Positions 2,104 through 47,724 of a stretch of 64,000 bases of DNA are shown here, in pieces. This stretch comes from Oculina patagonica (taxonomy: Eukaryota). Made by a program: the position numbers and the translations under genes. The stretch is from contig NC_135758.1 of assembly GCF_052425735.1 (NCBI RefSeq), positions 13,268,001 through 13,332,000 on the forward strand. Reading direction: 5' to 3'. Position 1 is the first letter of the stretch. Each line of letters begins with the position of its first letter. The notes under the pieces are model-generated. The model had not been told where the DNA came from and searched no databases. It saw only the letters and a list, made by a program, of their open reading frames with translations.

Positions 2104-2163
2104 GACAAGGCGGAAAAACCACTGAGCATGCGCGTGCAAAATCCCGCCAATTTCGAATTAAAA

Positions 2164-11470: not shown

Positions 11471-13585
11471 ACCAACTACCAGTTTACAGAGATTCACTTC
11501 CATAATCTCTCAGTAACACGACATTTTCAACGCCGCCTCGCTGTCATCAACTGCGTTTCAAGAGTTGGTTTCCATTTACCAATATTGTCAATAAGAAGAC
11601 GTATCTATCAAAGCTAGTTAATTTAAAATAAGTGATTCCAAAAATATCTTTTTAAAAATGTTATATTAATAACCACGACTTTTGGAGTTGCGTGCATAAA
11701 ACATGGAACTCCAAACGAGAAGCACTGCTCGGAGGCTGTAATCCTTCTTTCTCCAACGAACAATTAAGGTTTAATCGGTCATCAACCGCAAGTAGAAGAT
11801 ACATTGCATAAACAGAACCTCGTTCTGAGTGGATGAAAAACACTTGAATTCGATGACGGACCACAGAGCTCGAATCATTTCCCGAATGGAACGTCATTTT
11901 GATAGCTCCCGCCACGTGCAAACATGGTCATGTCATTCCATCGACAACAAACACCGACAGAACTTCACTAGGCAAACTTGTGGAGCCGCGGCGCGGAGGC
12001 GAAAAAATATTGATTCTGCATGTCACTGAGGTCTACTGATGTATGGAACTCAATTTCTTTATTTAAAAAAATAGGCTCGTTTGAGTAGATAATTGTGTCA
12101 AACAAGAGAGCCGGTGACAGCTAAAGAAGAGAAATCCCATTCTCATGTTCTGAATTACTTATCCTTTTCCCAGCGGTTAAATCTCAGTACCAGTGCAGTA
12201 AATCCCACATTCTCAGTTTTTAAAACGGCAAATCCAAGTTCTCATTATACCCGTTCATGACCCTCTAATCTCACCTAACTACAGCTGTCCGTGACTACTT
12301 CTATTTGTGTTACTTTGCGTATGTTGCAGATGTCGATGTGTTGAGTCAGTGTTAAGTCTAACGGTCATATTGATTGTCGTACATAAAACATGAAATTCCA
12401 AACTAGATGCCCTGCTCACAGGCTGTACTTCTTCTAACAAACGATAACTCCGTTTAAATCTTAATCAGTAGCTAATAGATAGTACACTGCATAAACAGTC
12501 CCATCGTTTTTAGCAGTACCCGTTTTGACTCCCTTCACCAAACCTCGTTCCCAGGGTCTCTCTCTCCCCGCCCCTTCTCGTTCCGTGGGGAGGGGAGAGA
12601 GGACCGAGGGCCTCATCTTCTTGCCGTCCTTTTCTAAAGGTTTCCGACCGTTCTTCTCCAATTATTGAAAAAGCCAGCATTGCGAGCCCACCGAAAGTTT
12701 TCACGAAACCTTGTTGACGAAAACCCCAGCGCTGGCAATCCGATAGAAGATACCGACAGAAAATGCTCAGTGTCTTCAACTGGACTGAAAAAAGCTCTAT
12801 AAAAACCATGACTGACGATAGCGTGATTTTGTTTTTCGGCCACACGCGAGTTAGGTTGGCAAAAAAGCTTTGTATTACAGTATAACTACGAAAGAAATAA
12901 TCGAAAGCCCAAACCCAGATAAGCCCAAGATACTCAAGTAATGGTGATGGGACTAAGTGGAATCCAAATTGGTGCCACCATCGTTAATTATTATATTTTT
13001 TATTTTTTCTGAAATCACACGTTACAATTTGGAGATGCATCCTTTGTGTCGTGTGTTTAAGGCTGAAGTTAGCTAACCTGCCTATAACAATGATAAAATA
13101 GTAACATGATTTTGTGAATACAAATTATGGAAAATTAAATCCGTCCCCGATTCGTATCCCGTTTCACGCACAATTTTAACCAAATTCACAGTCACAGCAG
13201 AATTCACGAATCAAGTGTCTTTTGTAGCTATTCTCACGCGTCACGGTCTAATTAGTTTTGTCCTGTTTTCACGATCACGCGTGACGGTCTACTCTGTGCC
13301 CTTTTCACGTGCCCTCTTCTACCCTTTATCCATATGCGCTAAAATTTAAGATGAAAAATCTCATTACCTAAACATCTAATAAGCTTAAATTGACATCTGG
13401 TCGAGAACTGAGTGCTGGACGCGTGATAGACTTTAAACTTCGTAAAAGCGATCTCGTAGTCTCGTCTTCGCTTCTAAAAAGAGACTGATCAAAGTCTAAT
13501 TTACATCCGATTATATTCAATGTTCCTATAACGTGCTTGATATACAAACAGTTTTAGGCCTTATGTGCCAAAAGTCGATTGCTTA

Positions 13586-13915
13586 CCGTAAAATTCCGGT
13601 TATAAGCCCCCCCGCTTATAAGCCCCCCCGGTTATAGGCCCATCAACCTGGAAACAAAAAATACATCCGGTTATAAGCCCCCCGGATATAAGCCCCCCTC
13701 TACCGGATGACAGTACTGAACAGGGCTAAATGATGCTTTTTTGTGCGTTTTTAACTTAAAAACGTATTTCGATCAACACTCCCGAGGCTCGTTTCGAAAC
13801 GTTTTTCTCCTTCCGCTTTTAAGCCCTCCCGAATATAAGCTCCTCCGCTTATAAGCCCACCCAAAAACCCTTACGAAGTTGTATAAGCCCAGGGCTTATA
13901 ACCGGAATTCTACGG
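13586..13915. mobile_element. 330-bp MITE, Tc1/mariner-pogo type
   Basis: TIR CCGTAAAATTCCGGTTATAAGCCC / GGGCTTATAACCGGAATTCTACGG, TA on both sides (13584-85, 13916-17), internal tataagccc repeats. Absent at the homologous site of the right arm (~39605-39625). Confidence 0.9.
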
Positions 13916-14469
13916 TATGTCCTCACGTGTTAGCGTTTGTGCACGCTTTCTTCCCGCATCACCAACAACTCTCATTTTGATTGAGCCACGTGAATGGCCA
14001 CGTCATTTTCTCTTTTCCTTTGTGTTACAATCTCATTTCATGTTTTTTCGTGACTGTATTTGTTGAGGCTCATATTCCGCCTATTTATACTCGTGCAAGG
14101 TCAAACAACACACTCATTGAATCTTTCGCAGGCCAGCTAGCCGATCTGGCTGGCGGTTACTAGCTTGCCTCTTGAACGATGAACCAACCATCTTTTGATG
14201 GTACAACCAGCAACTGAACGAGCCAATTTCAACCAATAATTTATGGCTGCCAGACTAGGCCATCCAAAACCAGCTTCCACCGAATGGCCGAAGATGGTTC
14301 AACGTACGGTTTTTTGAAAAAACAGCATCAAAGGAAGAGACTAGCACCTACAGCGTATTTTTTATTTTAAATTAGAACACTGTCTACCGCTTTGTAATAT
14401 TATTATTTTTCTTCGTGCTAGTATTTTAATATTTTTTAAATGATTTCTTCATTTTTTTTTTTGAATATG

Positions 14470-17300
14470 TAACCCGCAAGATTTTTAGTTGAAGAAAATT
14501 TCTGACAGGGGTAGAAGAAAACACTGCCACTGGACAAACGAAGTATCGAAAATTTGTAAATAATAACTCCCACTAACCAACTAAGGAAATACACGCATGC
14601 ACCAGAGTAACTTTCTGAAAGCGGAACCAATAGAAAAGAATTACGGCACGTATTTTTTTGATGCAAGTAGCCCGGAACAGTTAAAATAAAATGGAACACT
14701 ACCTAACGAAATGGACAATCTAAGTAGGACTACCTCGGCAAGACCCGGAATTTGTCCTTCGTTTACTCAATGGACGATGAAATGAAGGAAACAAGGAAGT
14801 CGGAGCGAGTTAATACACCAGGAGCGATGGCAAAGATATAGGAGTCAAAAAAAGAGGAAAAATTGAAACTGGACCAAGGTGAAAATGGAAAAAGATTTAA
14901 TAGACGCTTGGCAAGCTGAGATAGAACGCAGATATTATGGACAGGTTCGACTGTACAAAAACACAGAAACACCTGCGACGCTTGGACACTGCCCACCGAC
15001 AAATAAAATGGAACAGAAGACAACTTAAATTTGTGCAACTCATACTAATCATTATTATTTCTTGGCTGATATCAGGCAGGAACATAAATTTTTTTGGCTT
15101 TCTTTTGTGGCCAACTTAGTGGTGTTTAAAATGGAAATAATCTTGGAAGGACGTTAAAAGTTTTTGTGGTTATTGAGATTGTCAGTGATCGGAAGTGTTA
15201 AGATCGGTTTTTCGCATCAATTATGCTGAAAATTAAACGATTGGCGTCGGCTTTCATAGATTAACGAAGGACATTTTGCACATTTTATTCTAGTGCTTAG
15301 AAGCTTGTGCTGGGCCCATGTATTCTTGATAGTCTTTTTTACAGTGCCCCGACAATTTGCGCTAGCGCTCCGCGGAACAAACAAAATAGTTTCGCAACGT
15401 AACATTCATGCGCTATGATCGCAAAATTCGGCTAAAATATTTTCGATATGAATCTGTAGCTCCATAAAGCCCAAGTCAGTCAAATAAAGCAATTCTTCAT
15501 TTTACAAAGGGAACTTTTAAATTACTCTGTGTGTATTCAGTAAAGGGAGAAAAGCCAGAACGGCTACAACGGCCTGATGGAATAATAGAGCAATTCTATC
15601 ATCTTCAAAGGGAACGAACGAACGAAGAGAGAGAAGGTGAAGGCTACTATAGTTTACGTTTTTAGCAGGAAAGACTGAAAATAGATGGCCGCCAAGATGA
15701 GCAAAAGATCAAGAGGCCATAACCTTCGAATTTATTAGTTCGGTTCTTCATGTTCGGAGCGGGTTTGCTGGAAATTTTTACACGGTAAGGTTTCAATAAA
15801 CTGCAGTTAAATCAGCAATACAGGAGAAATATTTACAGGAAAATGGATGTAACGGACAATCAACAACTAATGACAAATTTGCTTATGATGAAAATAATAC
15901 CCTAGATACTAAATCTAGTAATCAGAATGAAACGACTTGATATTTACAGCAAACACGTTTGTTGTCGTTTCAAATTATTTTTAAGATGCGAATTGATTCT
16001 CGAACCGATGTTTTCCTGAAATAACCTTTGCTATGGACGATGAGACGTGAGATTTCCCGAAGTACGCTCCGCCAAGCGATGGTGATATTAGTTCTGCGTG
16101 TAAAAATGGCGGCTCGTTACAAGGAACACAGTCGCAGCAAATAATTCATAAAAATAAATCACGACAGAGGAACTTCAAAAAAGTTCGTAAACGAAAAAAA
16201 ATCCCGAGTAGTGAGTGGATTATAAAGATGTTAAGATGACATTAAGGAATCAATTGTCATCTCAGTTCAAAGAGCTAAGCGTGAACGGAGGTAAACTTTT
16301 TACCGTTCCGTTATGAAGTAGAGTAGTTTAGGGGCAATAACTGAAAAAATTTAAAAGATAAATAAAGAGCTGCACGTCCACCCTTGTCAGTAAATACCAC
16401 GAATTTTGTCGTGTATTTCAAGCATTTTTGTTGACAAATGGGATGAATTTTAAAATTGAAATTTGAAAGCGTACAACTGAGGCGTTGTGGTTCGCTTATT
16501 TTTGCTTTTCGAAGATGTTAATATGGAATAAAAGGATCACGTTTAGCTAACTTGAATACGTAAGAGAACTCTAAAATTTGCTTTCACATGTGAAGAGGAA
16601 TTATCGACTCAGTAGAGATAGTGATAGTTTCAAGCGAGTAAGAGTACGTAATTTAATCAATTTTAAAACAGATTTGTTAGGATTTATTATTTAACACAAA
16701 ATCAAGTGAAATCAGCCTGCATCATATTATACTCTCTTTCTAGGCAACTTTATAAATGTTTTTACACGAGGTCAACTGTGGGTCAGAAAAACAACAGTTA
16801 TTCACCGTGATATTTTATTGCAACAGCTACAGAATCAAGAAGACTTTGGAATAACATAGCTAACGTGATATTGATAAGGTAAGCTTCAAGAGATAGGTCT
16901 GCAACTTGTTAAAGCTAAACAAATGGGGCCATTCTCACAGGCAGTGAGTAATGATCAAGTTAAGTTTGAGTGATTTTAAACACACTGTGCGTTTTAAAAG
17001 TTGTGTAATTGATAGTGTGTTGCAAAAGCTATCGAGCAATTTTTTGCTTTATGCGCTGAAACAAGATTTAATTTCACAATGACAGGTTTCTTTGAGGCTG
17101 AATCTGTTCATTGCGTCCTCCTTTGTTCAACGGAAATGAAACGATCGCAGGTTGAAGGAAAGTTCATTGTGTTTGGAAATTATACTGCAATCTTTTTTAA
17201 AACGACAACAAAGGAAACTTAATTTCAAAATGTCTAGCTAGATTTGTTACAAAATGGCTGATGCTCATTCTTTATTTACTTTCTTCTGAGTATTAAAGCA
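14470..17300 (+). pseudogene. Heavily decayed coding-like region, candidate NACHT/NLR remnant (left copy)
   Basis: Only frame-hopping motif traces: KPERLQRPDGI (~15550-15585, possible eroded Walker A), LFLLF / MLIWNK (~16490-16535, possible helical domain 1), F..GFFEAE (~17065-17105, possible winged-helix FxHxxxQEFFAA). No long ORF. Confidence 0.35.
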
Positions 17301-17399
17301 ATTGTTTCTTGCTTTTTAATATCTCGTGTCTACTATTTCACTTTTAACCAGTATAGCTTCCCTTTTGTTATCTTTGTTCAGTTCACCCTCTCGTCGCAG

Positions 17400-20300
17400 G
17401 CAGTCATGTAAATCTGGTGAAAAGAGACTGCATTATACTTTTGCTTTTGTCTTAGTTTTTGGACAAGAAACTTGCTATGGACCAGATGTTTTTATTACAA
17501 ACAATTTTGTTGTTAAAATTCATTGTGTACGTTTCCTTGATCAAAGAACTCGAAGGAAAGAAACGAAGTAAGGGCGAGGACGACTGATTTTCGAAGCCAT
17601 TTTGTACGTCGAACAAATTTGAATTTATCAACCCGTTTTTATAGAATGCCGGAACAATGTGTCATTTCTCCTTGTGTGGACATTGAAGAGTCAAGAATTT
17701 AGAAATTACACATGAAAGAAACGAGGTTAGAGCATTCGCGAAATTACAGAACACATATTGAAGTGCGAGGAGTGACTCGAGCGGATGCTGTACGTTGCAG
17801 GCGCGAAACCTTTCGTTATCTGTTTCAAGCTAAGGAAATTACAAATTTTGTGATATTGTCAGAATTCTTTTTTTCAAAATTCTATCCCACCTGCTTTATT
17901 ACTCTCACTCCAGATTTCTTTTTTTTTATTTATTTTGGAAGTCGCTAACCAGTCTTACATTCATTCATCGCAGAAATAACTTTGCCTCTTGTTATGACAA
18001 TTGAACGGCAGTCCTGTGGGTCTAGTGAGGCTTGCAACTTTCGTTTAGTTCTTGCTGTTAAGTACTTTTGCTAGAGAGGATGATTGTTACTAATTAACGT
18101 AAAAGGGCACTTTCAAATTCCGATTTGCTGACGGATGTAGCTGCACGAGGAAGATTTTTAGGTCAGTTTCATTGTTTTGCACGACTCGGAGTTATGATTT
18201 ACAATTGCAAATGCGTCGTATATGATGCATTTTTATGGTTTCAAATTTGATGGAATTGCAGACATCTTTCCACAAACGAGTCAAATAACCAGCGAAATTC
18301 TACCTTGGTCTTTGCTTATAATCTTTACAAGGAAAGTAGCAGTAACTGAAATTTGAGCGATTATCACCGTATATCTGCAAATTGACGCCATATTGTAGAA
18401 ATGTGGATATTTTACTCCATCTTCTCGTGTGAATCAAAAATTACAAATAAAACATTTTCTTTTCCATGCGTTTCAACGAAACGAAAAGAAAGTTAAAAAT
18501 TGTCCATGGAAATGCATGGTTTAAGATGAACGGTATTGTGGGTGTAAAGCTCAACTTGACTCTGGTTTAATGACTGGAGGAGTTCTGTTAGTTCTTTCAG
18601 CGAATGAATCTCTTGAAAGAAAACAAGTTCTGTTGTGCAAGGATTCCCTATAGTATTTACTGACAACTAAATGTGAATTACAGACGACGAAATGGTGAAT
18701 TGTTTTTATTCTCTAAAAGCGAGCTCCATGTTTGTAGATTTGACTCCGTTATGAGCCTTTTGCCTTATTATTTGGAACAAAACTTCCTTTGGCCAAGATT
18801 TTTAGTTACAAACGGTTTTCTTGTTAACAATTCACTTCTTAAATGTATTTTGGTCAAAGATCTCGAAGGAGAGAACCGAAGTAAGGGCGAAGAAGAGATT
18901 TTCAAGCCGTTTACGCCGAACGAATTTGAGTTTATCAACACGTTCTTATAGCACGAGCAATGGGTTATTTTTTTGTCTGGACACAGAAGAGTCAAGAAAT
19001 TCGAAAAACATGAAAGAAACCAATTTGGAGCTCTCGCAAGACCCTAGAGCACAATGTAGTAAGCTTTACGTCGCTCATGGCGCAACACAATTCGTTTCAC
19101 TCTATCTTCAAGGAAATTACAATTTTTGATTTACGATTTTCTTTCCGACTTCTCTCTCAGTTCCTTACTACTCTCACTTGGATTCCTTTTTTGCTTCTTT
19201 TGAAATTCTTATCAGTGTTAAAGTCTCATCCCGGAGATGACATCGCCCTCTCTTTTTCGTGCAGATAATTTAGCATCAGTCTGTCGATTAGTGAGGATAT
19301 ACGTTTTGCAATAAAACATTTATTTCGCTAGAGAGAGAGCCTGTAACGCAAATGGACACCTGATTGATTTCTGGTGGATTTTTGTACGGGGAGGACTTTT
19401 AGGTCAGTTTTATTGGTTTCCGCAACTCGAAGTATATGTTTTATGTTGTAAGCGTCTTATTTTTGTAAGGTGTTAATTAAATGGAATTGCAGTATTTTTC
19501 ACAAAAGAGTCATATAGCGATGTGCTACCTTAGTCTTTCGCTAAAATTCGGTGAACGCGGATAACTGAAATCAAAGCGATGGCCGATAGCTCAGCATGGC
19601 GCCATACTGTAGGTATGTGGCTATTTCACCTTGTTCGTGTAAACAAAATAAATAAAACATTTTCTTTTCATCATTTTACTGAAGAGAAAATAAAGCTAAA
19701 AACTTGTACAAGAAAATGTTTAAATGAACAATTTTGTAGGTTTGAAGCTCGACTCGGTTTACTGACACGAGGAGTTAGGTTACACACCATAATAAAGCAC
19801 AAATTCCATACACCACAAGAGTAGAGAAAGTGACGGAAGCCATAGTTCCCTCGGTTGTCATATTTTTTCTACAAAGATGCGGGTCTTTCGCATGGCCACG
19901 GAATTAATTACTATATTCTCGTGACCAAATATCTGAATTTGACTTCAAAACAATCAATGACCGAAAAAACTTTCCCTGCGAAAAAGCTTGTCACGAATAG
20001 CTATTATGAATGGCTGTTGTTTACTGTTAGTTCACTCGGCGAAAGAGTCTCTTGAAAGAAAATTATTTTTTTTTAAGGATTCCCTTATAGTATTTACTGA
20101 CAACTAACAGACGACGAATGGTGCATTTTTTTATTCTCTTAACGCGAGCTCCATCTTAGTGGATTTGACTCCGTTATGAACCTTTTGTCTTATTATTTAG
20201 AAAAAACTTCATTTGGCCAAGATTTTATTTACAAACTTTTCTTGTTAACAATTAAGTTTTTAAATTTTCCATGGTCAACGAACTCGAAGGAGAGAACCAA

Positions 20301-23300
20301 AGTAAGAGTGAAGAAGAGATTCTTCAAGCCGTTTACGCCGAACATTTTCAACACTTCTTAAGCACAACAAAGGGTTTTTTGTTTGTCTGGGCACAGAAGA
20401 GTCAAGAATTCAAATAAACATGAAAGAAACCAATTTGGAGCTCTCGCGAGACCCTAGAGCACATCGTTCTAGTACGCTTTACGTCGCTCATGGCGCAACA
20501 CAATGCGTTATCAACTCTTATAATTTCAAGGAAACTACAATGTCTTGGTGATATTTTAAGAATTTTCCTTTCCGAAACTTCTCTCTCAGTTCCTTACTTC
20601 TCTCACTCGGATTTCGTTTTTGCTTCTTTTGAAAATTGCTTATCAGTGTTACACTCAGTCATCCCGGAGATGACATCGCCCTCTCTTACTTCGAGCAGAT
20701 AATTGAGCATCAGTTCCTGTCGGTTAGTGAGGCATTAAACTATCCTTCCTGTAGTAAAACACTTTAACTTTCGCTAGAGGAATGATTTGCACTGGATAAC
20801 GCAAATGGACACCTGAAAATTTCGATTTCTGGTGGATTTTTGTACGGGGAAGACCTTTTAGGTCAGTCTTCATTGTTTTCCACAACCGGGAGTCATGATG
20901 TTATATGTTGTAAATCGTGTATGTATTTGAAAAGTGTTAAATTTAATGGACGTGCAGATATTTTTCCACAAACGGGTCAAATAACAGAGATTTTACCTTA
21001 GTATTTCGCTTACAATCTGTTCGGTGAACGCTGAATAACTAATATCAGAGCGATTGTGGCCGATTATGCCCATTATGGCGCCATACTGTAGGTATGTTGA
21101 TATTTTACCCTTTGTGCTCGTGTAAACAAAATTGCAAAAAAAAAAACATTTTCTTGTTCATGCAATTTACTGAAGAGAAAAGGAAGCTAAAAACTTTTAC
21201 AAGAAAATGGTTTAACATGAACAATTTTGTAGGTGTGAAGCTCGACTTGATTCTGGTTTACTGACACGAGGAGTTTGGTTACACACCATAATAAAGCACA
21301 AATTCCATACGCGACAACAGTAGAGAAATGTGAAGCCATAGTTCCCTCGGTTGTAATGCCTTTTCTACAAAGATGCGGGCCTTTCGCATCGCTACTGAAT
21401 TTATATACTATCATTGCTCGCGACCAAAGATTTGAATTTCTTGACTTCAAAGAAATTGAAACAACTAAAATAACTATCCCTGCGAAAAAGCTAGTCATGA
21501 ATAGCTATAATTAATGGCCGTTAGTTACTGTTAGTTCACTCGGCGAATGAATCTCTTGAAAGAAAATAAGTTCTGTTGTGTAAGGATTCCCTATAGTATT
21601 TACTGACAACTAAATGTGAATTACAGACGACGAAATGGTGAATTGTTTTTATTCTCTAAAAGCGAGCTCCATGTTTGTAGATTTGACTCCGTTATGAGCC
21701 TTTTGCCTTATTATTTGGAACAAAACTTCCTTTGGCCAAGATGTTTTAGTTACAAACGGTTTTCGTGTTAACAATTCACTTCTTAAATGTTTTCTTGGTC
21801 AAAGATCTCGAAGGAGAGAACCGAAGTAAGGGCGAAGAAGAGATTCTTCAAGCCGTTTACGCCGAACGAATTTGAGTTTATCATCCCGTGATTTCTGTTT
21901 GTCTGGGCACAGAAGAGTAAAGAAATTTAGAAGTTGAACACGAAAGAAACGAGTTTAGAGCTCTCGCGAGTTCCTAGAGCACAACATTGAAGAGTGAGGA
22001 GTCGGTCGGACTGGACCGTCCGCTTTACGTCGCTCATAGCGCGAAACAGTTCGTTATCAACTCTCACAATTTTAAGAAAATTACAAGGTCTTGGTGATAT
22101 TTTAATTAAGAACTTTTCCTTTCTAAAATTTCCCTTTTAGTTTCTTAACTAATCTTTCTTTGGAATTGTTTTGTTTCTTTTGGAAATTGCTTATCAGTGT
22201 TACATTTAGTAATCGCGGAGATGCCATCGCCCTCTCTACTTCGTGCAGATAATTGAGCATCAGTCCTGTAGGTCTAGTGAGGCATTTAACTATCGTTCTT
22301 GCAGTGAAACACTTTTAACTTTCGCTAGAAAGCATGATTTGTACTGAATAACGCAAATGGACACCTGAAAATTCCGATTTGCTGGCGGGGGTTGTTGCAC
22401 GGGGAAGACCTTTTAGGTCAGTCTTTATTGTTTTCCACAACTCGGAGTCATGATGTAGTAAGTGTTATTGCGTCGTATATTTTGTGAGGTGTTAAATTTA
22501 AAAGAATTGCAGATATTTTTCAACAAAAGAGTCAAATAACTAGCGATGTGCTACCTTAGTCTTTCGCTAACAATCTGTACGGTGAACGCGGAATAACTGA
22601 AATCAGAGCGATTATGGCCGATTATGCCCAAATTGACACCATGTTGAAGGAATGTGGATGCTTTAGTATTTCTAATTGCAAAAAAAACGTTTTCTTGTCC
22701 ATGCATTTTACTGAACAGAAGAGTAAGCTAAAAATTGTCCATGAAAATGGATTAAGATGAACGGTATTGTATGTGTGAAGCTTGATTCGAATCACTTTTT
22801 TACGGCAGACGAAAAGTTCGGTTACATACGATAACATGGCACAATTTCCATACGCGACAACAGTGCAGAAATGTGAAGCCATAGTTCCTTCGGTTGTTAT
22901 ACCTTTTCTTCAAAGTGCGGGTCTTTCGCACAGCCACTGAATTAATATACTATCATTGCTCGTGACCAAACATTTGAATTTCTTGACTTCAAAGAAATTG
23001 AAACGACTGAAATAATTATTCCTGCGCGAACAAGCTAGTAATAAAAGGCTGTTATGAATGGCCGGGATTCACTGGTAGTTCACTCGGCGAATAAATGTCT
23101 GGGAGAAAAAAATCCGTTGTGTAAGGATTCCCTGAAGTATTTACTGACAAGGAAATGAGGATTATAGACGACGAAATGGTGAATTGTTGCAATTTTGTAA
23201 ACGCGAGCTCATCTCGGAGCTCATGAAGTGCGGGATGAATTGACTGCATTATGAAGCTTTCGCTTTCTGTCCTCATTTTTGTACAAGAAACTTACTATGT

Positions 23301-23830
23301 CCAAGATGGTTTTATAACAAGCAGTTTCATGTTAACAATTCACTTGGAAACGTTTCCTCGATCAAAGAACTCGAAGAAGAGAAACGAAGTTAGGGGGCGA
23401 GGACAAGGTCTTCCAAACTGTATGTTTATGGCGATCAAATTTGAGTTAATATTCATCCCATTTTATAGCATGAACGTTTCTTATTTCTCCGATTGTCGTG
23501 ACCCAAAAGAATCAAACAATTTAGAAATTACACATGAAAGAAGAGAGGTTGGAGCATTACGCCTTTTTTTATGAGGGATGTACTTGCACAAGAAAGACGT
23601 TTTAGGTCAGTCTTCACTGCTTTGCACAACTCGAAGTCAGTATGGTGTTATATGTTGGAAATGCGTCGTAGACAGTGTCTTTGTACAGTCAATGGGACTG
23701 CATTTTTTTTTTACCCGCAAACGATTCAAATAACCAGCGAAGCGCTATCTTGCCTCTTTCGCTAAAAATCTGTAAGGTGAACGAGGAATAGCTGAAATCA
23801 GAAAGATTATGGCCGATTATGCCGAAATTG
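17400..23830 (+). repeat. Tandem array of ~1.4-1.5 kb units (about 4 full plus a partial), left arm
   Basis: Marker cttgaaagaaaa..gttgtgtaaggattccct at ~18612, ~20051, ~21555 and ~23098. Units look like decayed coding sequence, e.g. ARNSSLSTLTI at ~22040. Confidence 0.92.
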
Positions 23831-23916
23831 ATTATTTACGGGAACAAGGTATTTAGTTGTACTCCGCAACAAATTCATTGGCATGAACTCTATTAAAAAA
23901 GATTAAATAATAAAAA

Positions 23917-24081
23917 AATAAGCTTTACCTGGTGCTAAAGAATGGTGAAAAACAACTCTGCCTTCTAGTGTACCACGGCGTTTATTGCGTAGCACGAATA
24001 AATAAGCTTTACCTGGTGCTAAAGAATGGTGAAAAACAACTCTGCCTTCTAGTGTACCACGGCGTTTATTGCGTAGCACGA
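23917..24081. repeat. 84-bp exact tandem duplication, left arm only
   Basis: aataagctttacctggtgctaaag...gcgtagcacga occurs at 23917 and 24001. The right arm has one diverged copy (~27580-27660). Confidence 0.9.
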
Positions 24082-24599
24082 AAACTCACGGCACTTGCTC
24101 AATCCTCACGCTTTACCAATTCTCGTGTTTGATTGGCTAGGGTTTAATTATGGTGTCGTGATAAGGTCCAATGGTGCACAGCTTTCTTCTAATGCCGTAG
24201 ATCAGCTCCACTAGCCCCACCCTCTCTAATTAGCTCCTTGTTCTTCGGTTAATTCATTTTTTTTAAAAAATTTTATATACCCTCTACTGTTTTAAGCCAC
24301 ACCTTTCCCTTTTACAGATTATAAATTTATATGAACAAGGAAACAAGGCATCTATGCCCCCTTTATAGGTATTTATCCACCGAAGTTACTTATTATTGTT
24401 GCTATTTTGTGAAAACGTGTTACAAAAAAGTAATAAAAAAGCCATCTACTTTTAAATTAGCTATCTTTGATAATATTTTAAACCGGTAACCTTAAACCAA
24501 CTCTTGAAGAGCATTTTTATGATACGAGGCAACGTTAGAAATGGCTTTTTACCGTCGTGTTACTAAAAGATTATGGGATGTGATCGTGAGTAGTTAGTG

Positions 24600-31700: not shown

Positions 31701-34700
31701 TTGGAGTCAAGCTTTGAAACACCTACAATACCGTTCATCTTAATCCATTTTCATTGACAAGTTTTAGCTTACTCTTCTCTTCAGTAAAATGCATGGACAA
31801 GAAAACGTTTTATTTGCAATTAGAAAGGGTAAAATATCTGCATTCCTTCAGTATGGCGCCATGTTGGGCATAATCGGCCATAATCGCTCTGATTTCAGTT
31901 ATTCCGCGTTCACTGAAGAGATTGTTAGCGAAAACCTAAGGTAGCACATCGCTAGTTATTTGACTCTTAAGTGGAAAAATATCTGAGATTCCATTAAATA
32001 TAACACCTTTCAAAAGACATAAACGACGCATTTACAACATATAACATCATGACTCCGAGTTGCAGAAAACAATAAAGACTGACCAAAAAGGTCTTCCCCG
32101 TACAACGACACCCGCCAGCAAATCGAAATTTTCAGGTGTCCATTTACGTTAATTTAGTGAAAATTATGTTATCTACACCAAAAGTGAAAGTGTTTTACTG
32201 CAAGAACGAAAGTTGAATGCCTCACTAGACCGACAGGACTGATGCTCGATTATCTGCACGAAGAAAGAGAGGGCGATGTCATGCATCTCCGCGATGACTG
32301 TGTGTAACACTGATAAGCAGTTTCCAAAAGAAACAAAGAGAATTTTAAAAAGGAAGAGTTCTCAAAATATCACCAAGACCTTATAATTTGCTCGAAATTA
32401 TGAGAGTTGATAACGAACTGTTTCGCGCTAAGGGCGACGTAAAGCGTACGCTCCTGTCCGACTCCTCATACTACCACAATGATGCCTCTAGGATCTCGCG
32501 AGAGCTCTAAACTCATCCTGGCCAAATGAAGTTTTTTCTAAATAATAAGACAAAAGGTTCATAACGGATTTAAATCCACTAAGATGGAGCGCGCGTTAGG
32601 AGAATAAAAACAATTCACCATTTCGTCGTCTGTTATCCACATTGAGCTGTCAGTCAGTAAATACTATAGGGAATCCGTACACAACTGAACTTATTTTCTT
32701 TCAAGAGATTCATTCGCCCGAAAGAACTTACAGGAAATAACTGCCATAAATAATAGCTATTCATGACTAGCTTTTTCGCAGGGATAGTTATTTTAGTTGT
32801 TTCAATTTCTTTGATGTCAAGAAATTCAAATCTTCGGTCACGAGCAATGATAGTATATTAATTCAGTGGCCATGCGAAAGACCCGCATCTTGTAGAAAGA
32901 GATATGACAATCGAAGGGACTATGGCTTCACATTTCTCTACTGTTGTTGCGTATGGAATTTGTGCTTTATTATGGTGTGTGACCGAACTCCTCGTATCAT
33001 TAAATTAAACCAGAATCGAGTCGAGCTTCACACCTACAAAATTGTTTATGTTGAACCATTTCCTTGGACAAGTTTTATTCCATTAAATTTAACAGCTTTC
33101 AAATACATCATATATATACGACGCATTTACAACATACAACATCATGACTCCGAGTTGCGGAAAACAATGAAGACTGACCTAAAAGGTCTTCCTCGTGCAA
33201 CAATACCCGCCAGCAAATCGGAATTTTCTGGTGTCCATTTGCGTTATTCAGTGCAAATAATGCTCTCTTACAAAAGTTAAAGTGTTTTACTGCAAGAACG
33301 AAAGTTGAATGCCTCACTAGACCGACAGGACTGATGCTCAATTATCTGCACGAAGAAAGAGAGGGCGATGTCATGCATCTCCGCGATGACTGTGTGTAAT
33401 ACTGAAAAGCAAATTTCAAAAAGAAACAAAACAAATCCGAAGGAAGATTAGTTAAGAGACTGAGAGAGAATTTTTAGAAAGGAAAAATTCTTAAAATATC
33501 ACCAAGACCTTGTAATTTCCTTGAATTTGTGAGAGTTGATTATAACGAACTGCTTCGCGCTATGTGCGACGTGAAACGTACCAAAATGATGTGCTCTGGG
33601 GTCTCGCGAGAGCTACAAATTTGTTTATTTCATGTTTAATTTCTTAATTCCTTGACTCTCCTGAGCCCAGACAAACAGAAATAGCCCATTGTTAATGCTA
33701 TAAGAACGGGTTGTTAAACTCAAAATTATTCGGCGTACACGGCTTGAAGAATCTCGTCTTCGCCCTTGTTTCGTTTCTCTCTTTCGAGCTCTTTGAGCAA
33801 GGAAACGTTAACGAAGTGAATTGTTAACAGGAAAACTGTTTGGAATAAAAACATCTTGGCCAAAGGACGTTTCCTAATTCTAAAAAATAAGCCAAACGGT
33901 TCATACGGCAGAGTCAAATCCACTGAGATGGAGCTCGCTTTTAAAGAATAAAAACAATTTACCATTTCGTCGTCTGTAATTCACATTGAGTTGTCAGTAA
34001 ATACTATAGGGAATCCTTACACAACAGAACTTATTTTCTTTTAAGAATTTCATTCGCCGAAAGAACTAACAGTAAATAACGGCCATTAATAATAGCTATT
34101 CATCACAAACTATTTCACAGGGATAGTTATTGCAGTTGTTTCATGTTTTGAAGTCAAGAAACTCAGATATTTGGTCACGAGCATTGATAGTATATTTATT
34201 CAGTGCCCATGCGAAAGACCCGCATCTTTGTACAAAGCGGATAAAACGACAGAATGAACCATGGCTTCACATTTCTGTTGTTGTGTATGAAATTTTTATT
34301 ATATTATAGTATGTACCAGAACTCATCCAGTCGGTAAACAAATGAGTCGAGTTGAACGTCACACCCACAATACCGTTCATCTTAAACCATTACCATTGGC
34401 AATTTTTAACTTCCTTTTCGTTCAGTAAAACGCATGGACAAGAAAATGTTTTAGTTGCAATTTTTGGTTCACACGAGAAGATAGGGTAAAACATCCACAT
34501 TCCTACAATATGGCGTCAATTTGCAGATATACGGTCACAATCGCTATACTTTTAGTTACTTCTTCTTTCCCCGTGAAGAATATAAACAAAAGACCAAGGT
34601 GTCATTTCCCTGGTTATTTGACTCGTTTGTGGAAAAATGGCTGCAATTCCGTCAAATTTAAAACCATAAAAAGGCATCGTATGCGACGCATTTACAACAT

Positions 34701-35500
34701 ATAACATCATAACTCCGAGTCGCGCAAAACAATGAAGACTGACCTAAAAGGTCTTCCTCGTGCAACTACATCCGTCAGCAAAATGGAATTTGAAAGTGTT
34801 CTTTTACGTTAATTCAGTAATAATCATCCTCTCTAGCAAGAGTACTTTCCAGCTAGAACTGAATGAAAGTTGAATGTTTTACTAGACCGACAGGACTGCC
34901 CGTTCAATTATAATAAAGCATTATACAATAAGCGAAATAATTTCTGTGATGAATGAATGTAAGACTGGTTAGCAACTTCCAAAAGAAACAAAAGAGAGAA
35001 ATCAGGAGTGTCCGGAGTGATTAAGCAAGTGGGAGAGAATTTTGAAAAAGTTGAATTCTTATCGTGAGAGTTGATAACGAAAGGCTTCGCGCCATGAGCA
35101 ACGCAAAGCATCCGCTCGAGTCACTCCTCGCACTTCAATGATGTGTTCTGAAATTTCGCGAAAACTCCAACCTCGTTTCTTTCATTCGTAATTTCTAAAT
35201 TGCTTGACTCAAGTAGAAATGACACACTGTTCGTGCCATAAGAACGTGTTGATAAACTCAAATTTCAGTTCAGCCTACGAAACAACTTGAAGAATCTCGT
35301 CCTCGCCCTTACTTCGTTTCTTTCCTTCGAGTTCTTCGACCAAGCTAGGAAACGTATACCAAGTGAATTGTTAACAAAATAAAAACATCTCTTCCATAGA
35401 AACTTTCTTGTCCAACAACTCAGATAAAAGCAAAAGGTTCATAATAAAGACACTATTTACCAGATTTACATGAGTGCCTGCGGCGACAGAGTGAAATGAA
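28720..35500 (-). repeat. Tandem array of ~1.3-1.5 kb units, right arm
   Basis: Marker (a)gggaatccttacacaac at ~29850, ~31355, ~32668 and ~34008, plus a more diverged partial unit at 28720-29130. Confidence 0.9.
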
Positions 35501-38500
35501 GAATAATAACAAAGAGGAAAGCTTCTGGTTAATAGTGAAATAGCAGACAAAAGATACTTAAATAATTGCTTTAATACTCAGAAGAAAGTAATATGAAAAC
35601 ATGAACATCAGCCATTTTGAAACAAATCTAGCTAGACATTTTGAAATTAAGTTTCCTTTGTTGTTGTTTTAAAAAAGATTGCAGTATAATTAAAGACGAG
35701 TTCGCGGATCTTCACAAAGACAACCATTCTACGAAATAAATACGCCAAATATCTCATTGGCTCGAAAAAGTTCAAATGAGAAATACTCTCACGAAATCGT
35801 TCTTCTCCATTGATGTAAAATTAAAGTATGTTTATCTTTTTTCCGTCGTGGACCAGCTTTTATAGGCAATCTAACTGAACTTAGTTTGCTCCGAGCTCAA
35901 AACGTTCTGAGTAATTCATGGATTTTTTCTTGGGTGAGCTGTCCACTTGTTCCCAATGAGATAAAATTGTATGGCCCTTGTTTGTTCATCCTCGCGCTTC
36001 AAAATTACCTATTCTCTCGAGAAGGCTTCTCGCAATTTAGCAGTGTGTTGTCGTGCGATAAACAGAAATTTCGTTGACTTATGAGCACAAACAAGTGCCA
36101 CCCGGACGACAGCTACAGCCATTGTAAACATTCTCATTTTTGTTTGCATGTTGATTTGGTTTCTCTGCGAAACATTCTATCTCGGTGGAATCTGTAACTC
36201 AGTAGACATCCCGGCCTGGAGGCCTCATTTTGCAATTCCTCAGGAGTCACGCTTTATGGGTGTTCGCTGGCTCGAGTATAAAACTCATATAATTTCCAAA
36301 GCACCAATGGACTTTAACCTCTCATCGTTTCAGTTACGTTGAACAAAGGAGGACGCAATAAAAAGATTCAGCCTCAAAGAAACCTGTCATTGTGAAAACT
36401 CGTTTCAGCACATAAAGCAAAAACATGCTCGATAGCTTTCGCAACACACTATCAATTACACGACTTTTAAAACGCACAGAGTGTTTAAAACACTGCAAAA
36501 TTAACTTGACAAGGCCTGTGGTCAGCCGTTGAGTATGGCACCATTTGTTTAGCTTTGACAAATTGCAGACCTATCTATTATTTTATCTTTGGAATCCCTT
36601 GTAGCTTACCATATCAATATCACTTTAGCTATGTTATTCCAAAGTCTTCTTGGTTCTTTAGCTGTTGCAATAAAAAATATCACGGTGAATACCTATTGTT
36701 TTTTTGACCCACAGTTGACCTCGATGTAAAATACACTTTATAAAGTTGCCAAGAAAGAGAGTATAATATGATAGCAGTTGCTGATTTCGACTTGATTTTG
36801 TGTTAAACTAACCTGAAATCCTACACAAATCTGTTAAATCTGGGCATTCAATATACGTTCTCTTACTCGCTTGAAACTATCTCTACTGAGTCGATAATTC
36901 CTCTTCAGATGTGAAGGCAAAATTTAGCAGTTCTCATTACGTATTCAAGTTAGCTGAAACGTGATCCTTTTATTCCATATTAACATCTTCGAGAAGCAAA
37001 AACTTAAGCGAACCACAACGCCTCAGTTGTACGCTTTCATAATTTTAACTTTTAAGAATTCATCCCTTTTGTCAACAAAAATGCTATGAACACCGATGAA
37101 AACATTCGTGGTATTTACTGACAAGATTGGACGTGCAGCTCTTCATCTGTCTTTTAAACAAATTCCTCAGTTACTGCCCCTAAACTACTCATACGAACAA
37201 CAAAAAGTTTAGCTCTGTGCACGCTTAGCTCTTTGAACTGAGATGACAATATCGATTCCATTAAGACTGTCATTCATCTTAAGTTAATCCACTTACTACA
37301 TGCAGGCATTTCTTTTTCGTTTACGAAAAATGCTTTTGTATGACAGGATTCCGTACTTCGGGAAATCTCACGTCTCATCATCCATAGCAACTAAAGGTTA
37401 TTTCAGGAAAACATCGGTTCGAGAATCAATTCGCATCTTAAAAAATAATTTCAACGACAACAAGACGTGTTTGCTGTAAATATCAAGTCGTTTCATTCTG
37501 GATTACTAGATTTAGTATCTAGGGTATTATTTTCATCATATGCAAATGTTGTCATTCAGTTGTTCATTGTCCGATTACATGCTTTTTTCCATGTAAAATA
37601 TTTCTTCTGTATTGCTGATTTAACTGCAATTTATTGAAACCTTACTGTACAAATGTTCCAGCAAACCCGCTCCGAACATGAAGAACCGAACTAATAGGCA
37701 TTCAAAGGTTATATGGCCTCTTGAAAATCTCTGTTGCTCATCATTGGCGGTCATCCATGCTTCAGTCTTGTCCTGCTAAAAATGTTAAACTATATAAGCC
37801 GTTTTTCCTCCTCTCCCTTCGATCGTTCGTTTCTCTTCGAAGAAGGATAGAATTGCTCTATATTCCATTGACCGCCTTGGACTCCATGGAGCTACATACT
37901 CACTGATATCGAACAAAAGATATGCTTTGAGGCGAAGTTTTAGACCGAAGCGCATGAATGTTGCAAACTTTTCTGTGTTCCGCGGAGCGCCAGCGCAAAT
38001 TGTCGGGGCACTGCGAAAAGACTGTCAAGAATCCTTGGGCCCAGCACAAGCTTCTGAGCACTGCAATAACATGTGCAAAAGTTCCTTCATTAATCTATGA
38101 AAGCCGGCGCCAGTCGTTTAATTTTCAGGAATAAAGTTGATGCGAAATATACCGATCTTAACACTTGCCAAACCAAGACAATCTCAACGACACGCACACA
38201 AAACTCGTTTAGACGTCCTTCCAGGTATTTATTTCTATTTTAAACACCTCTAAGTTGGCCACAAAAGAAAACCTAAAACAATTTGTGTTCCTGATATAAG
38301 GCAAGCAAATAATAACTGATTAGTAATGAGTTGGTCCAAATTAAAATCTTCTGTTCCATTTTACACGATTTTGTTGTCGGTGGGCAGTGTCCAAGCGTGG
38401 CAGTTGTGTATTTCTGTGTTTCTTGTACAGTCGAACCTGTCCATAAATAGTCAAGCGTTTCTAATCTCAGCTTGCCAGGCGTCGTTGTAATTAGCAAAAG

Positions 38501-39035
38501 AAACCTCTTTTTTCCAGATAGATTGTCACCCTGCGGTCCAGTATACTCAAAGTTGTAGCTCCTCTTTGTTTAAGTTAGAAAGCCATATTTTTCTAGATTT
38601 TCTTGTTTACCATCGCTCCTGGTTGCTCACTTGTCACATATGGTTTCTTCATTTCAGTCGATTTCCACAGTAGTAAACAGAAGGACCAAGGATTTCCAGA
38701 GGTCTAGAAGCCGAGGTAGTTCTACTTAGATTGTCCATTGTTCGTTGTAGGTAGTATTCCATGTCTTATTTTAAAAACGTGTTTCCGAGGCTTAGCCATC
38801 AAAAGAAATCACGTTTTGCCGTTAAAAGTCCAGGTTTCTTGGAGTTCCAGCTTTCCAGAGAAGTTACTCTGGTGTATTACCATTAGTTGATTAGTAAAAA
38901 TTCTAGTTTTTAACATTTGTCGATTACTTCGTTTGTCCAGTGGCAGTGTTTCTCTTCTACATTGTAATGCCACAGATGTCAGCTAAATATACTATTTCTG
39001 TCAACTTATAAAACGGGTTACATCAATGTCGAATT
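35500..39035 (-). pseudogene. Decayed coding-like region, candidate NACHT/NLR remnant (right copy)
   Basis: Inverted homologue of 14470-17300. The minus-strand sequence gagttttcacaatgacaggtttctttgaggctgaatctttttatt (~36358-36402) reads EF-H..Q..FFEAE.FI across frames. Confidence 0.35.
35691..36287. mobile_element. 597-bp insertion specific to the right arm
   Basis: Left arm reads uninterrupted ggaaattatactgc at ~17175. Here TATAAT flanks both sides (35685-90, 36288-93). Starts (t)taaagacgagttcgcggatc, a TTAA-AG Kolobok-like end, but no matching second end was found. Confidence 0.65.
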
Positions 39036-39971
39036 TAAAAAAAATACAATGGAAGATAACTCGATTCTAAAACAGTAAATATCTTAACAACATGCAAATA
39101 AAAATGTTACCAAAACTAAAGCAATGCCAACGAAACGGGAAAAATGACATAATTGTTACCGAACAGTGGTAGACAGTGGTCTAAAAGATTACAAAATTTG
39201 CGCTGTAGGTGTTAGTCTCTGTCCTTTGATGCCAATTTCTGCAAAACCAAACCATACGTTGAACCAATCTTCGGACATTCGCCACATTCGTTCGAAGCTG
39301 CTTTTGGATGGCCCAGTCTGGCAGCCATAGTGGTTAAAGACGTTAACCGCCAGCGAGGTCTGCTAGCTAGCTAGCCTGCGAAAGATTCAGTGAGTGTGTT
39401 GTTTGACCTTGCACGAGTATAAATATAGGCGGAATATGAAGCCTCAACAAATGACATAGTTACGAAAACAAGATGAAATAAGATTGTAACACAAAGGAAA
39501 AGAGTAAATTCACGTGGCCCCTCACGTGTCTCAATCAAAATTTCAGGCAAAGAGAATTGTTGGAGATACGTGTGGAAAATGTGCACAAACATTTACACGT
39601 GAGTACATATTATGTAACAGACTTTTGTCATATAAGTCCTTTAACTGTTTGTACATCAAGCACGTTACATTGAATATAATCGAATGTAAATTTTACTTTG
39701 ATCAGTCCTTTTTGGAAGCGAAGACGAGACAACGAGATCGCTTTTACGAAGTTTACATATACGGGTAAAAATAAGACAAAAATTAGACCGTGACGTGTAA
39801 AAAATAGCTAGAAAAGACGCGTGATTCGTAAATTCTGCTGTGACACGTGAATTCCGTTAAAATTTGTGCGTGGAACGGGATCACGAATCGGGGACGGGAT
39901 TAATTTTCCAGACTTTGTATTCATATATTACTATTTTGTCGTGGCTATAGGCAGGCTAACTTCCGCTTTTA

Positions 39972-39999
39972 ACACACACACACACACACACACACACAC
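39972..39999. repeat. (AC)14 microsatellite
   Basis: Read directly. The left-arm homologue at ~13050 has only gtgtgt. Confidence 0.95.
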
Positions 40000-40076
40000 G
40001 ACACAAAAAGATGCATCTCCAAATCGTACGCGTCCCATTCTGTTAAACCATAGTTAGTAGAGGCTTTTATTTTTAT

Positions 40077-40696
40077 TGTGGCTTTTATTGAATTTCAGAC
40101 CTTTCTGTCAGCCTTCTTGGCACCTTTTGTTGAAACAAGCCAGATCAAGCCTGTTGGCACGGCCCGGTTACTTTATGCTGCAGGCCCTACTAACCAGCCG
40201 GAGACGAAATGTCGGGCACCGACCGGGTGACGCTTGGGCCTTTCCAGGGCCATGTTGTGTCACAATTTCTACACTGATTTGACAAAAGGTAGACCTCGGG
40301 ATACGTGCTTGAAGGCCTTCAAGCCAGTCCCGCGCCCGAACATTGAGGAGTGGGGAGGGGGTCAGTCAAGGAAGGTTGTGCCGAGTAGCTCAGTCATTGA
40401 CCGAACAGCCCTAGGGAGACCAAGGTCAGGCATTAAATTGCTGGCTTGCTAAGGGGTGGGCATAGTCAGGTTGGGGTCAATTTCACCAGACTTTGCCAGT
40501 CACAGCAATGTCACGGTAATTTACTCATGATTGTCATGTTCTTGGCAGCTGGCTACAGCCCTGTGGCAGCTCTCGGCTGTTATCAGGGGTGACTAGGCAC
40601 TCCACCTAGCCCCCTAGTCTATCCAGGGACCCTCGGGGGAGGGAGTGTGGCTGTTACTGAATTTCAGACCTTTGTGTCAGCCTTCTGGGCACCTTT
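40077..40696. mobile_element. GC-rich 620-bp element bounded by 51-bp direct repeats
   Basis: tgtggct(t/g)tta(t/c)tgaatttcagaccttt(c/g)tgtcagccttct(t/g)ggcaccttt at 40077-40127 and 40646-40696 (4 mismatches). No ORF of note. Confidence 0.6.
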
Positions 40697-40704
40697 CCAC
40701 CTGG

Positions 40705-41015
40705 ACACCATCAATATAACCGTTAGACTTATCATTGATCAACACATCGACATCTTCAATATAAGCAAAGCAACGCCTATACAGAGTTAACAGGATTTAT
40801 CGTTCGTTAGAGGAAGAAGGACTACAGTCCGCGAGCAGGGCTTCCGGCTTTTGGTGTTTCACGTTTTATGCACGAAACACCAAACAAGAAAGTTTGCTCG
40901 CTAGGAAGACCATCAATATGACCGTTAGACTTATTTCTTATTCAACACATCGACATCTGCTGCATACGCTAAGAAACACCTATGTAAGTAGTCGCTGTAG
41001 TTAGGCGAAGTTAGC
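40705..41015. repeat. ~200-bp unit repeat containing an embedded hairpin
   Basis: accatcaatat(a/g)accgttagactt at ~40707 and ~40909. Further copies at ~42135-42200 and 42600-43360; one inverted copy at 12265-12450. Confidence 0.85.
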
Positions 41016-41119
41016 AATAGAAAGTGAGTTATAATTCTAATTTTTATATTTAAATCGAGTCCATGGCCATGGGTTTCTTTGTCCCATGCTCGCGTCATTG
41101 TTGAAAAATTCATCTTTGA

Positions 41120-45089: not shown

Positions 45090-45142
45090 GTGGCCCCACA
45101 AACGTCAACGTTTAAGCGTTTGTTAATCCTCGTAAGTGTCTT

Positions 45143-47566: not shown

Positions 47567-47567
47567 C

Positions 47568-47719: not shown

Positions 47720-47724
47720 GGTGA

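Follow-up and report, generated by a model that had tools for sequence, protein, structure and literature searches.

A stretch of 64,000 nucleotides from the stony coral Oculina patagonica (contig NC_135758.1, positions 13,268,001 to 13,332,000; hereafter the window, numbered from its first letter) contains an inverted pair of colinear arms, at 13023-24438 on the left and at 27245-40028 on the right, separated by a spacer of 2.8 kb. As far as its sequence allows us to judge, this structure is quite likely to have arisen long ago by palindromic segmental duplication of intergenic, non-coding DNA, ~11-13 kb in length. The source segment would already have held an array of five tandem units, ~1.5 kb in period (a macrosatellite), and one event would have copied this segment in reverse beside itself, leaving a spacer of ~1.1 kb. 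Such a layout is expected when intrastrand fold-back priming follows a DNA break, or when replication switches template, and the palindrome probably formed in one of these two ways. The arms would then have drifted without protein-coding constraint to their present substitutions and many indels, each of them gaining its own transposon insertions, with array units exchanged or re-duplicated within the arms and a high-copy transposon landing in the spacer. Both the mechanism of formation and the lack of a present function are points that we infer. The components of the locus, in their order along the window, are as follows.

12265-12508, minus strand: left outer hairpin repeat of ~200 bp, ~1.2 units, with an inverted match to 41014-40783 (74-79% identity)
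13023-17443, plus strand: non-repeated outer part ('leader') of the left arm, non-coding; blocks of 73-88% identity align it colinearly with 40028-35446
15804-16066, no strand: low-divergence block 1, 96% identity to ~37626-37352
16434-16659, no strand: low-divergence block 2, 96.4% identity to 37072-36841
17444-23831, plus strand: left tandem array, period ~1.45-1.55 kb, with units L1 starting at 17444, L2 at 18757, L3 at 20182 and L4 at 21700, and a partial L5 at 23242-23831
23916-24082, no strand: perfect 84-bp tandem duplication of the left arm only (TRF 2.0 copies, 100%), single-copy in the right arm
23997-24438, plus strand: left inner segment, 72% identity to 27662-27245
24439-27244, no strand: spacer, ~1.1 kb before transposon insertion, mostly an inverted copy (78% identity) of 10788-11571
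25190-26877, no strand: high-copy TIR transposon in the spacer, ends GACACCGCGGCA..., target duplication of ~9 bp
27245-28739, minus strand: right inner segment, with ~1.3 kb that lacks a left-arm counterpart
28740-35445, minus strand: right tandem array, with units R5 28740-29773, R4 29773-31245, R3 31245-32556, R2 32556-33911 and R1 33911-35445
35446-40028, minus strand: non-repeated outer part of the right arm, from self-alignment, carrying a private 596-bp insertion (35692-36287)
40077-40696, no strand: private 620-bp insert, right side only, with 51-bp terminal direct repeats
40707-41014, plus strand: right outer hairpin repeat of ~200 bp, 1.5 units, from self-alignment and fold test
41120-41787, minus strand: third, shortened copy of an outer arm segment, with a direct match (70%) to 38370-39043 and inverted matches to 14510-14833

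Self-alignment recovers the inverted colinear arms around a ~2.8-kb spacer that the original prediction had described. Fifteen blastn blocks (E-values as low as 0.0) form a chain that pairs 12265-24438 with 41014-27245 in inverted orientation over 10,747 aligned columns, at a mean identity of 80% counting gaps. Over the 9,506 ungapped columns the arms diverge by 11.8% in substitutions (K2P 0.128), leaving an overall substitution identity of 88%, and many indels separate them as well. The ends of homology on either side of the spacer are defined at base level, and at the inner segments the chain has a gap, of 1483 bp in the right arm and of 165 bp in the left. The arm core begins at 13023 on the left and at 40028 on the right, and the outer boundary of the palindrome is not sharp, its 12265 and 41014 ends falling inside a repeat family that occurs also outside the arms. 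Private insertions are present on each arm as claimed, and they bear out the earlier view that the palindrome is not a mirror artefact of one read. The left arm carries a MITE (~13579-13917) with TIRs and a target duplication that is probably TA, and the right side carries the 596-bp element, bordered by a 6-7 bp ATAATT-type duplication, the 620-bp insert, whose direct repeats (40077-40127 and 40646-40696) are 92% identical, and, near 39975-40021, a run of (AC)n. Empty sites for the private MITE and TE insertions are found in the opposite arm. There are hints of uneven divergence along the arms, and only two arm-arm blocks, of 220-300 bp, reach 96% identity. In 200-column windows and against the 11.8% background, the binomial P is 5e-9 for block 1 and 8e-6 for block 2; the alignment of block 1 has indels of 1-5 bp, and hence this block is not coding, and that of block 2 has indels of 1-2 bp. 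The segment from which the third copy derives (38370-39043) has its left-arm equivalent at 14511-15100.

The tandem array that had been announced for each arm does exist, and the ~1.5 kb given as its length is in fact its period: each array extends over ~6.4 kb and comprises ~4.5 units of 1.43-1.54 kb, filling only the inner half of its arm. Direct self-matches in the left array lie at offsets of 1439-1572, and all copies map onto one unit, with an internal deletion of 240 bp in R2. The units are 72-89% alike, and in the chain the five left units align with the five right ones in the same order, from L1 with R1 to L5 with R5. Identities between corresponding units of the two arms (85% for L1-R1, 87% for both L4-R4 and L5-R5) exceed those of most pairs within an arm (72-84%), and the unit tree recovers L1+R1 and L4+R4 as clades with 100% support. 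Because the units are colinear across the arms, from L1-R1 to L5-R5, the tandem array predates the inverted duplication. Within-arm clades (R3+R4 and L2+L3) are found in unit segment 291-769, and later exchange within the arms turned the array into a mosaic.

The repeats at the outer ends of the palindrome do fold as hairpins, as had been proposed, with weaker folding in the left-side copies. Three right-side units reach z values of -2.6 to -6.9, compared with -2.3 for a further partial left copy at 11681-11824 and -1.1 at 12378-12508. The same ~200-bp family occurs at 42135-42213, 42617-43034 and 43192-43285, and further hairpin repeats (42135-43285) follow the third copy of the outer arm segment. 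Outward of these ~200-bp repeats, homology was sought as far as the inverted satellites of 78 bp (520-8465 and 59690-61057) and none was found; the satellites are hence not part of the palindrome. In the spacer, 10867-11571 matches 25188-24494 and 10788-10870 matches 26955-26874, and this inverted copy is as diverged as the arms. A one-step fold-back was considered as the origin of the copy and rejected, since such an event would not leave the segments arranged as A, C, A', C', as they are here. The transposon, which stands at a depth of 2000-4000 compared with ~25 for its flanks, splits one spacer sequence, and its empty site is visible in the 10788-11571 copy. Each half of the split sequence keeps the order of the uninterrupted copy at 10788-11571, and the target duplication is common to both; the two halves are thus tied to each other across the part that contigs cannot bridge.

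The existence of the locus in nature was addressed with Logan short-read contigs from runs labelled as three coral organisms. At single-copy depth, these contigs span the left arm into the spacer (24053-25214) and cover the right part of the spacer (26844-27242) and the right arm (27339-29150); they break at the high-copy spacer transposon and at ~27243-27338, and no single contig or read was seen across the whole spacer. Both arms and both junction regions occur together in each of the three samples. Taken with the transposon-split sequence, the contigs indicate that the inverted duplication is real and present in independent samples, even with 27243-27338 left unbridged. Depth is single-copy at 23200-25189 and 26981-29150, which applies to the inner 0.6-1.9 kb of each arm and to a likeness of at least 95%, and older, more diverged copies may exist elsewhere in the genome.

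No protein-domain, ORF or codon signal is detected in either arm, and the decayed coding region of the original prediction is thus not upheld. Pfam searches of the two arms, with 121 + 134 stop-to-stop pieces 42 aa or longer, gave no credible match and none better than E 0.008, a value at chance level because 255 pieces were tested. The spacer ORFs (the longest, at least 74 aa) and the longest ORFs gave chance-level Pfam matches only, and no transposase or other Pfam domain was found inside the palindrome. As a positive control, the same procedure on the flanks returned Fibrinogen_C (2e-50), Peptidase_A17 (1e-48), rve, PAN and EGF. The longest ORF open in both arms has 45 codons, and substitutions are even over codon positions. 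The ten aligned unit copies do contain open stretches, in several frames and on both strands, with frames that are not common across units, and these were dismissed as coding candidates. A leucine-rich repeat (LRR) consensus has zero matches in the six frames of both arrays, where Pfam likewise reports no LRR, and no NACHT or P-loop remnant is matched by Pfam in the arms; Walker-A-like strings, which all occur at one homologous position of the unit, 7 residues behind a stop codon, were set aside as chance. Rfam gives no match at gathering thresholds, only two at E up to 1 (0.47 and 0.68) that are far below gathering, and a tRNA search found none. Exact-pattern metagenome scans with one conserved unit core and one leader block gave 0 matches each, which is uninformative. 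RNA-labelled runs hold 10-23% of the sampled words of 22500-29500 and 13045-21700. A hairpin-RNA (endo-siRNA) locus would be expected to be transcribed across both arms and to yield small RNAs; in the stretch around the spacer, contigs from RNA runs occur only at 23466-25095 and on the transposon, and the right arm shows no such contig. The two inner segments share conserved CCAAT-like motifs and a conserved CAG|GTAAAG site.

Several other readings of the locus have to be weighed against an inverted segmental duplication of non-coding DNA. That the assembly joined two haplotypes, or a read and its mirror, head to head is extremely improbable: the whole spacer is bridged by no contig, but 11.8% substitutions, many indels and different transposon insertions go far beyond allelic differences, the two arms and their junctions are found together in every sample, and the split spacer sequence continues across the join. 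For practical purposes, this artefact may be taken as refuted. A giant foldback-like element had also been put forward; it would be of foldback or TIR type, move as a whole and have the arms as its terminal inverted repeats. Long inverted arms with internal tandem repeats, hairpin-forming repeats at the outer ends and a genome rich in unusual transposons would agree with it. The flanks of 12265 and 41014, however, share no direct repeat and hence no target-site duplication; the arms are 12-20% diverged, carry separate insertions and are single-copy in depth at their inner ends; no protein domain, transposase included, lies inside; the outer repeat family is found outside the arms as well; and a 1.5-kb period restricted to the inner half contrasts with the short-period repeats that run throughout the TIRs of FB elements. 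The proposal of such an element is not supported by these observations, and we consider it very improbable. The arms might instead be two copies from an old dispersed repeat family of low copy number, or stem from separate duplications, and have come together by multi-step rearrangement of a duplication-prone region. The third outer-arm copy, the equally old inverted copy of 10788-11571 in the spacer and the recurrence of hairpin repeats on both sides all point in this direction. Nonetheless, one copying event is the simplest account of 11 kb of colinearity with five ordered units and a common inner end, and it would take a coincidence for two copies to arrive independently at sites 2.8 kb from each other; a multi-step origin is unlikely.

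The remaining alternatives concern the content of the duplicated segment. An inverted pair of genes, or of recently dead genes, such as an NLR-like receptor with the 1.5-kb units as exon-intron modules, is highly doubtful. A repeat built of modules could look like tandem exon duplication, RNA-labelled runs contain 10-21% of the words of 13045-21700, and the conserved CCAAT-like motifs and CAG|GTAAAG site are in keeping with such a pair. Against it stand the 255 pieces without a Pfam match, although the control within the window worked, the shared ORF of at most 45 codons with no third-position excess, the zero LRR-motif matches, the Walker A strings adjoining stop codons, the frameshifting indels of the conserved blocks and an RNA contig (23466-23998) that covers the would-be intron. 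For known domains, a gene pair is thus largely refuted. The convergent inverted gene duplication of the original prediction can be retained as an inverted duplication, but no observation identifies the duplicated unit as a present or former gene. It is likewise improbable, if somewhat less so, that the palindrome is not inert, with the 96% blocks and conserved inner segments acting as constrained regulatory or ncRNA sequence and transcription from the centre yielding a long ncRNA or an imperfect hairpin RNA. The 96% blocks and the one-sided RNA contigs may nevertheless leave room for function or for arm-to-arm gene conversion.

Under the preferred reading, a structure that could be taken for a gene cassette, for a fossil NLR or for a giant foldback would be the product of a common type of genome rearrangement: an inverted segmental duplication, old and neutral, of intergenic DNA that contains repeats. 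It would be neither a broken pair of genes nor a giant mobile element. The locus would record an ordered series of events at one place in a coral genome, from a kilobase-unit array to its inverted duplication and then to within-arm exchange and transposon insertions. More generally, it suggests that a palindrome of this kind in a coral assembly can be real and need not be an assembly error.

Foldback (FB) transposons of Drosophila and their relatives have near-identical arms made of short repeats, are flanked by target duplications and exist in multiple copies. The coral locus resembles them in its long inverted arms with tandem repeats, but its arms are diverged, have a 1.5-kb repeat period, lack flanking target duplications and stand at single-copy depth at their inner ends. 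The fold-back inverted duplications described in humans have spacers of 766-70,466 bp, with a median of 3.4 kb (Hermetz et al. 2014, PMC3907307). As in those, two inverted copies here surround a short single-copy spacer, which at ~1.1 kb (now 2.8 kb) is in the same range; the coral duplication, however, is small (~12-kb arms), fixed and ancient, whereas the human ones are new and pathogenic (PMC3907307). It also differs in that junction microhomology has become unreadable after 12% divergence and in that its spacer holds an inverted copy of sequence from outside the left arm. The palindromes of the human Y chromosome (P1-P8) have arms that are kept >99.9% identical through gene conversion and that carry expressed genes. 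The coral palindrome shares their plan of arms and spacer, together with hints of uneven divergence in its 96% blocks, but its arms have drifted to 88% substitution identity, far from the near 100% of a palindrome maintained by gene conversion, and they hold no detectable gene. Macrosatellites are tandem arrays of kilobase units, such as D4Z4 or DXZ4, and the coral array belongs with them, comprising at least three head-to-tail units of kilobase size. Compared with these arrays it is short, old (units 72-89% alike), devoid of an ORF and duplicated within a larger segment, and it is like them in its 4-5 head-to-tail copies of ~1.5 kb and in its unit turnover and mosaic exchange.

The palindrome is most likely a real, ancient, non-coding segmental duplication with a pre-existing macrosatellite. 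Its arms are inverted and colinear, as the original prediction held: self-comparison with blastn gives an inverted chain of 15 blocks that pairs 12265-24438 with 41014-27245 over 10,747 aligned columns at a mean identity of 80%. A more sensitive search places the core arms at 13023-24438 and 27245-40028, beyond which homology is limited to a repeat family of ~200 bp, and the inner homology ends are sharp (~24431 on the left, ~27250 on the right). Arm-to-arm substitution divergence is 11.8% over 9,506 ungapped columns (K2P 0.128; 543 transitions, 574 transversions). This divergence is uneven, with blocks 15804-16066 and 16434-16659 reaching 96% identity to their right-arm partners (P 5e-9 and 8e-6, respectively, against the arm average); because both contain indels of 1-5 bp, they represent either non-coding elements under constraint or old tracts of conversion between the arms. 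Private insertions are likewise borne out. The left arm holds a MITE of 339 bp with inverted ends of ~26 bp, probably flanked by a TA duplication, and the right arm a 596-bp element with an ATAATT-type flanking duplication, each facing a visible empty site in the other arm. An (AC)n run and a 620-bp piece with 51-bp terminal repeats occur only in the right arm, and a perfect 84-bp tandem duplication only in the left.

The spacer is interrupted by a mobile element:

25190-26877: TIR transposon with ends GACACCGCGGCA... and a target duplication of ~9 bp

Four public runs supplied Logan contigs for alignment to 23200-29150: three DNA or unlabelled runs under three organism labels (X1, X3 and X5) and one run labelled as RNA. 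Each of the three non-RNA runs yields one ~1.16-kb contig (24053-25214) that leads from the left arm through the spacer into 25 bp of the transposon, and another (26844-27242) that spans the transposon end and the right-hand portion of the spacer; right-arm contigs over 27339-29150 are found in two of the three (X1 and X3). Junction and arm contigs stand at single-copy depth (~22-38 in X1; ~53-240, mostly 100-200, in X3; ~14-43, mostly ~18-23, in X5). The depth of 25190-25985 (~2,100-4,300 in X1 and X3, ~200-1,000 in X5) therefore marks a high-copy transposon, the first ~800 bp of which lie at roughly 100x single-copy depth in all samples; its 26185-26781 portion yields no contigs in any run. 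Contigs break at this transposon and at a short repeat (~27243-27338). On the right arm, the sole contig of X5 (organism C) is 94 nt long (27274-27367); this run covers 23200-27378 except for a gap common to all runs (25986-26781), but yields no contigs over 27379-29150. That taxon may lack this right-arm-only piece of ~1.3-1.8 kb or carry a diverged version of it.

The two halves of the spacer are tied together by their sequence, since 24494-25188 and 26874-26955 are colinear with the uninterrupted 10788-11571 and the transposon sits between copies of its ~9-bp target. This sequence is ~785 bp long and lies just beyond the outer end of the left arm; most of the original spacer is an inverted copy of it (78% identity). 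It has single-copy depth and carries neither TIRs nor a Pfam match. The contig comparison also reported an opposite-strand joint (23826 to 29150), which arises because the compared stretch ends at 29150 and the contig continuation resembles the left arm. An origin of the arms as two alleles is ruled out by the 12% of substitutions, the many indels and the different insertions. Junction contigs at single-copy depth, a spacer sequence split by a transposon and the divergence of the arms together argue against a mirror artefact.

Each arm contains the predicted tandem array, for which ~1.5 kb proves to be the period and ~6.4 kb the measured length:

17444 (L1), 18757 (L2), 20182 (L3), 21700 (L4) and 23242-23831 (partial L5): units of the left array
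between 28740 and 35445: units R5 to R1 of the right array

The inverted chain matches L1-L5 to R1-R5 in order, and cross-arm identities (L1-R1 85%, L4-R4 87%, L5-R5 87%) lie above most within-arm pairs (72-84%), which shows that a five-unit array was already present when the segment was duplicated. Trees built from two unit segments give 100% support to the cross-arm clades L1+R1 and L4+R4. In one of these segments (unit positions 291-769), R3+R4 and L2+L3 cluster by arm, with R3 and R4 only ~5.5% apart, and 18581-18757 matches the end of L3 at 96.6% identity. These within-arm likenesses show later exchange or re-duplication of units, making the array a mosaic.

The surroundings comprise the following features:

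520-2098 and 7657-8465: 78-bp satellite arrays, left
59690-61057: 78-bp satellite array, right, inverted orientation
45143-47566 (~45.1-47.6 kb), minus strand: BEL/Pao-type LTR retrotransposon, long ORFs with Peptidase_A17, integrase zinc-binding domain and core, and DUF5641
54633-63670 (54.6-63.7 kb), minus strand: gene with PAN, EGF and fibrinogen-C exons
63203-63670, minus strand: PAN domain of that gene
58055-58522 and 54633-54926, minus strand: its fibrinogen C-terminal domain, in two parts
11681-11824 and 12265-12508: ~200-bp repeat family, left
40707-41014, 42135-42213, 42617-43034 and 43192-43285: ~200-bp repeat family, right

The gene points its 3' end towards the palindrome, which from these surroundings is therefore intergenic, in a repeat-rich part of an AT-rich window (GC 35-46%). 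The 78-bp satellites lie outside the palindrome and form no part of it; the left one (520-8465) is interrupted by a 5.5-kb transposon (2095-7656) and the right one is apparently intronic to the fibrinogen-domain gene. A 168-bp direct repeat (44925-45090 against 47559-47720, 95% identity) accompanies the BEL/Pao element.

The arms had been interpreted as a decayed gene cassette in convergent duplication, or as a giant foldback-like element. For a gene, no evidence emerged. Every stop-to-stop piece of at least 42 aa (121 from the left arm, 134 from the right) was scanned against Pfam, with best E-values of 0.008 and 0.013, chance level for that number of tests; the same procedure on the window flanks recovered Fibrinogen_C (2e-50), Peptidase_A17 (1e-48), DUF5641, integrase, PAN and EGF, which shows that the method is effective here. 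No frame stays open in both arms together for more than 45 codons, differences between arms fall evenly over the three codon positions, open stretches in the unit alignment occupy multiple frames on both strands, out of register between units, and Rfam and tRNA scans are empty. A fossil NLR is unsupported, as the LRR consensus has no occurrence in the six frames of either array and the few G....GK[ST] strings lie shortly after stop codons, at a single homologous position in the unit. At the inner arm ends (24080-24200 and 27480-27600), paired CCAAT/ATTGG motifs are kept in both arms, and a short frame that reads outward from them stays open up to CAG|GTAAAG. This combination looks promoter- or first-exon-like, but the frame shows many non-synonymous changes and has GTG in place of ATG in the left arm.

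The foldback element is equally unsupported, lacking a target duplication (no direct repeat is common to the sequences flanking 12265 and 41014), near-identical arms and any transposase found within the palindrome. At a likeness of 95% or more the inner arm ends come out as single-copy, a threshold below which old, diverged copies may lie elsewhere in the genome; the array has a kilobase-scale period and is confined to the inner halves of the arms; and the outer ~200-bp family is also present outside the arms. Its units, which form short tandem runs at the left and right outer ends (11681-12508 and 40707-43285), have an internal hairpin stem of ~30 bp; three right-side units fold strongly (z -2.6 to -6.9) and the left-side copies more weakly (z -2.3 and -1.1). 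They may be a MITE-like element or kin to hairpin-ended elements of the same genome.

RNA-labelled runs contain 10-23% of the words sampled from 22500-29500 and 13045-21700. In the one aligned to 23200-29150, contigs cover 23466-23998 and 24323-25095, with none on the right arm, and this one-sidedness speaks against DNA carry-over and for some genuine unspliced transcription around the centre. A functional role for the conserved blocks and the central transcription is possible but has a low probability.

The layout is that of a segment, a short spacer and the same segment inverted. A break with intrastrand fold-back priming, or a replication template switch, would set an inverted copy beside its source, and one of these most likely formed the palindrome, although junction microhomology is unreadable after 12% divergence. 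A single clean event is at odds with the spacer copy, as old (78%) as the arms, with the resulting order A, C, A', C' (sequence outside the left arm, arm, and their inverted copies), and with a third, truncated outer-arm copy at 41120-41787; the locus was therefore rearranged more than once. A simple one-step fold-back fails to account for the 10788-11571 copy in the spacer. The palindrome exemplifies a known kind of rearrangement and is of low general interest; its spacer measured ~1.1 kb before the transposon arrived, as against 766 bp to 70 kb (median 3.4 kb) in human inverted duplications (PMC3907307).
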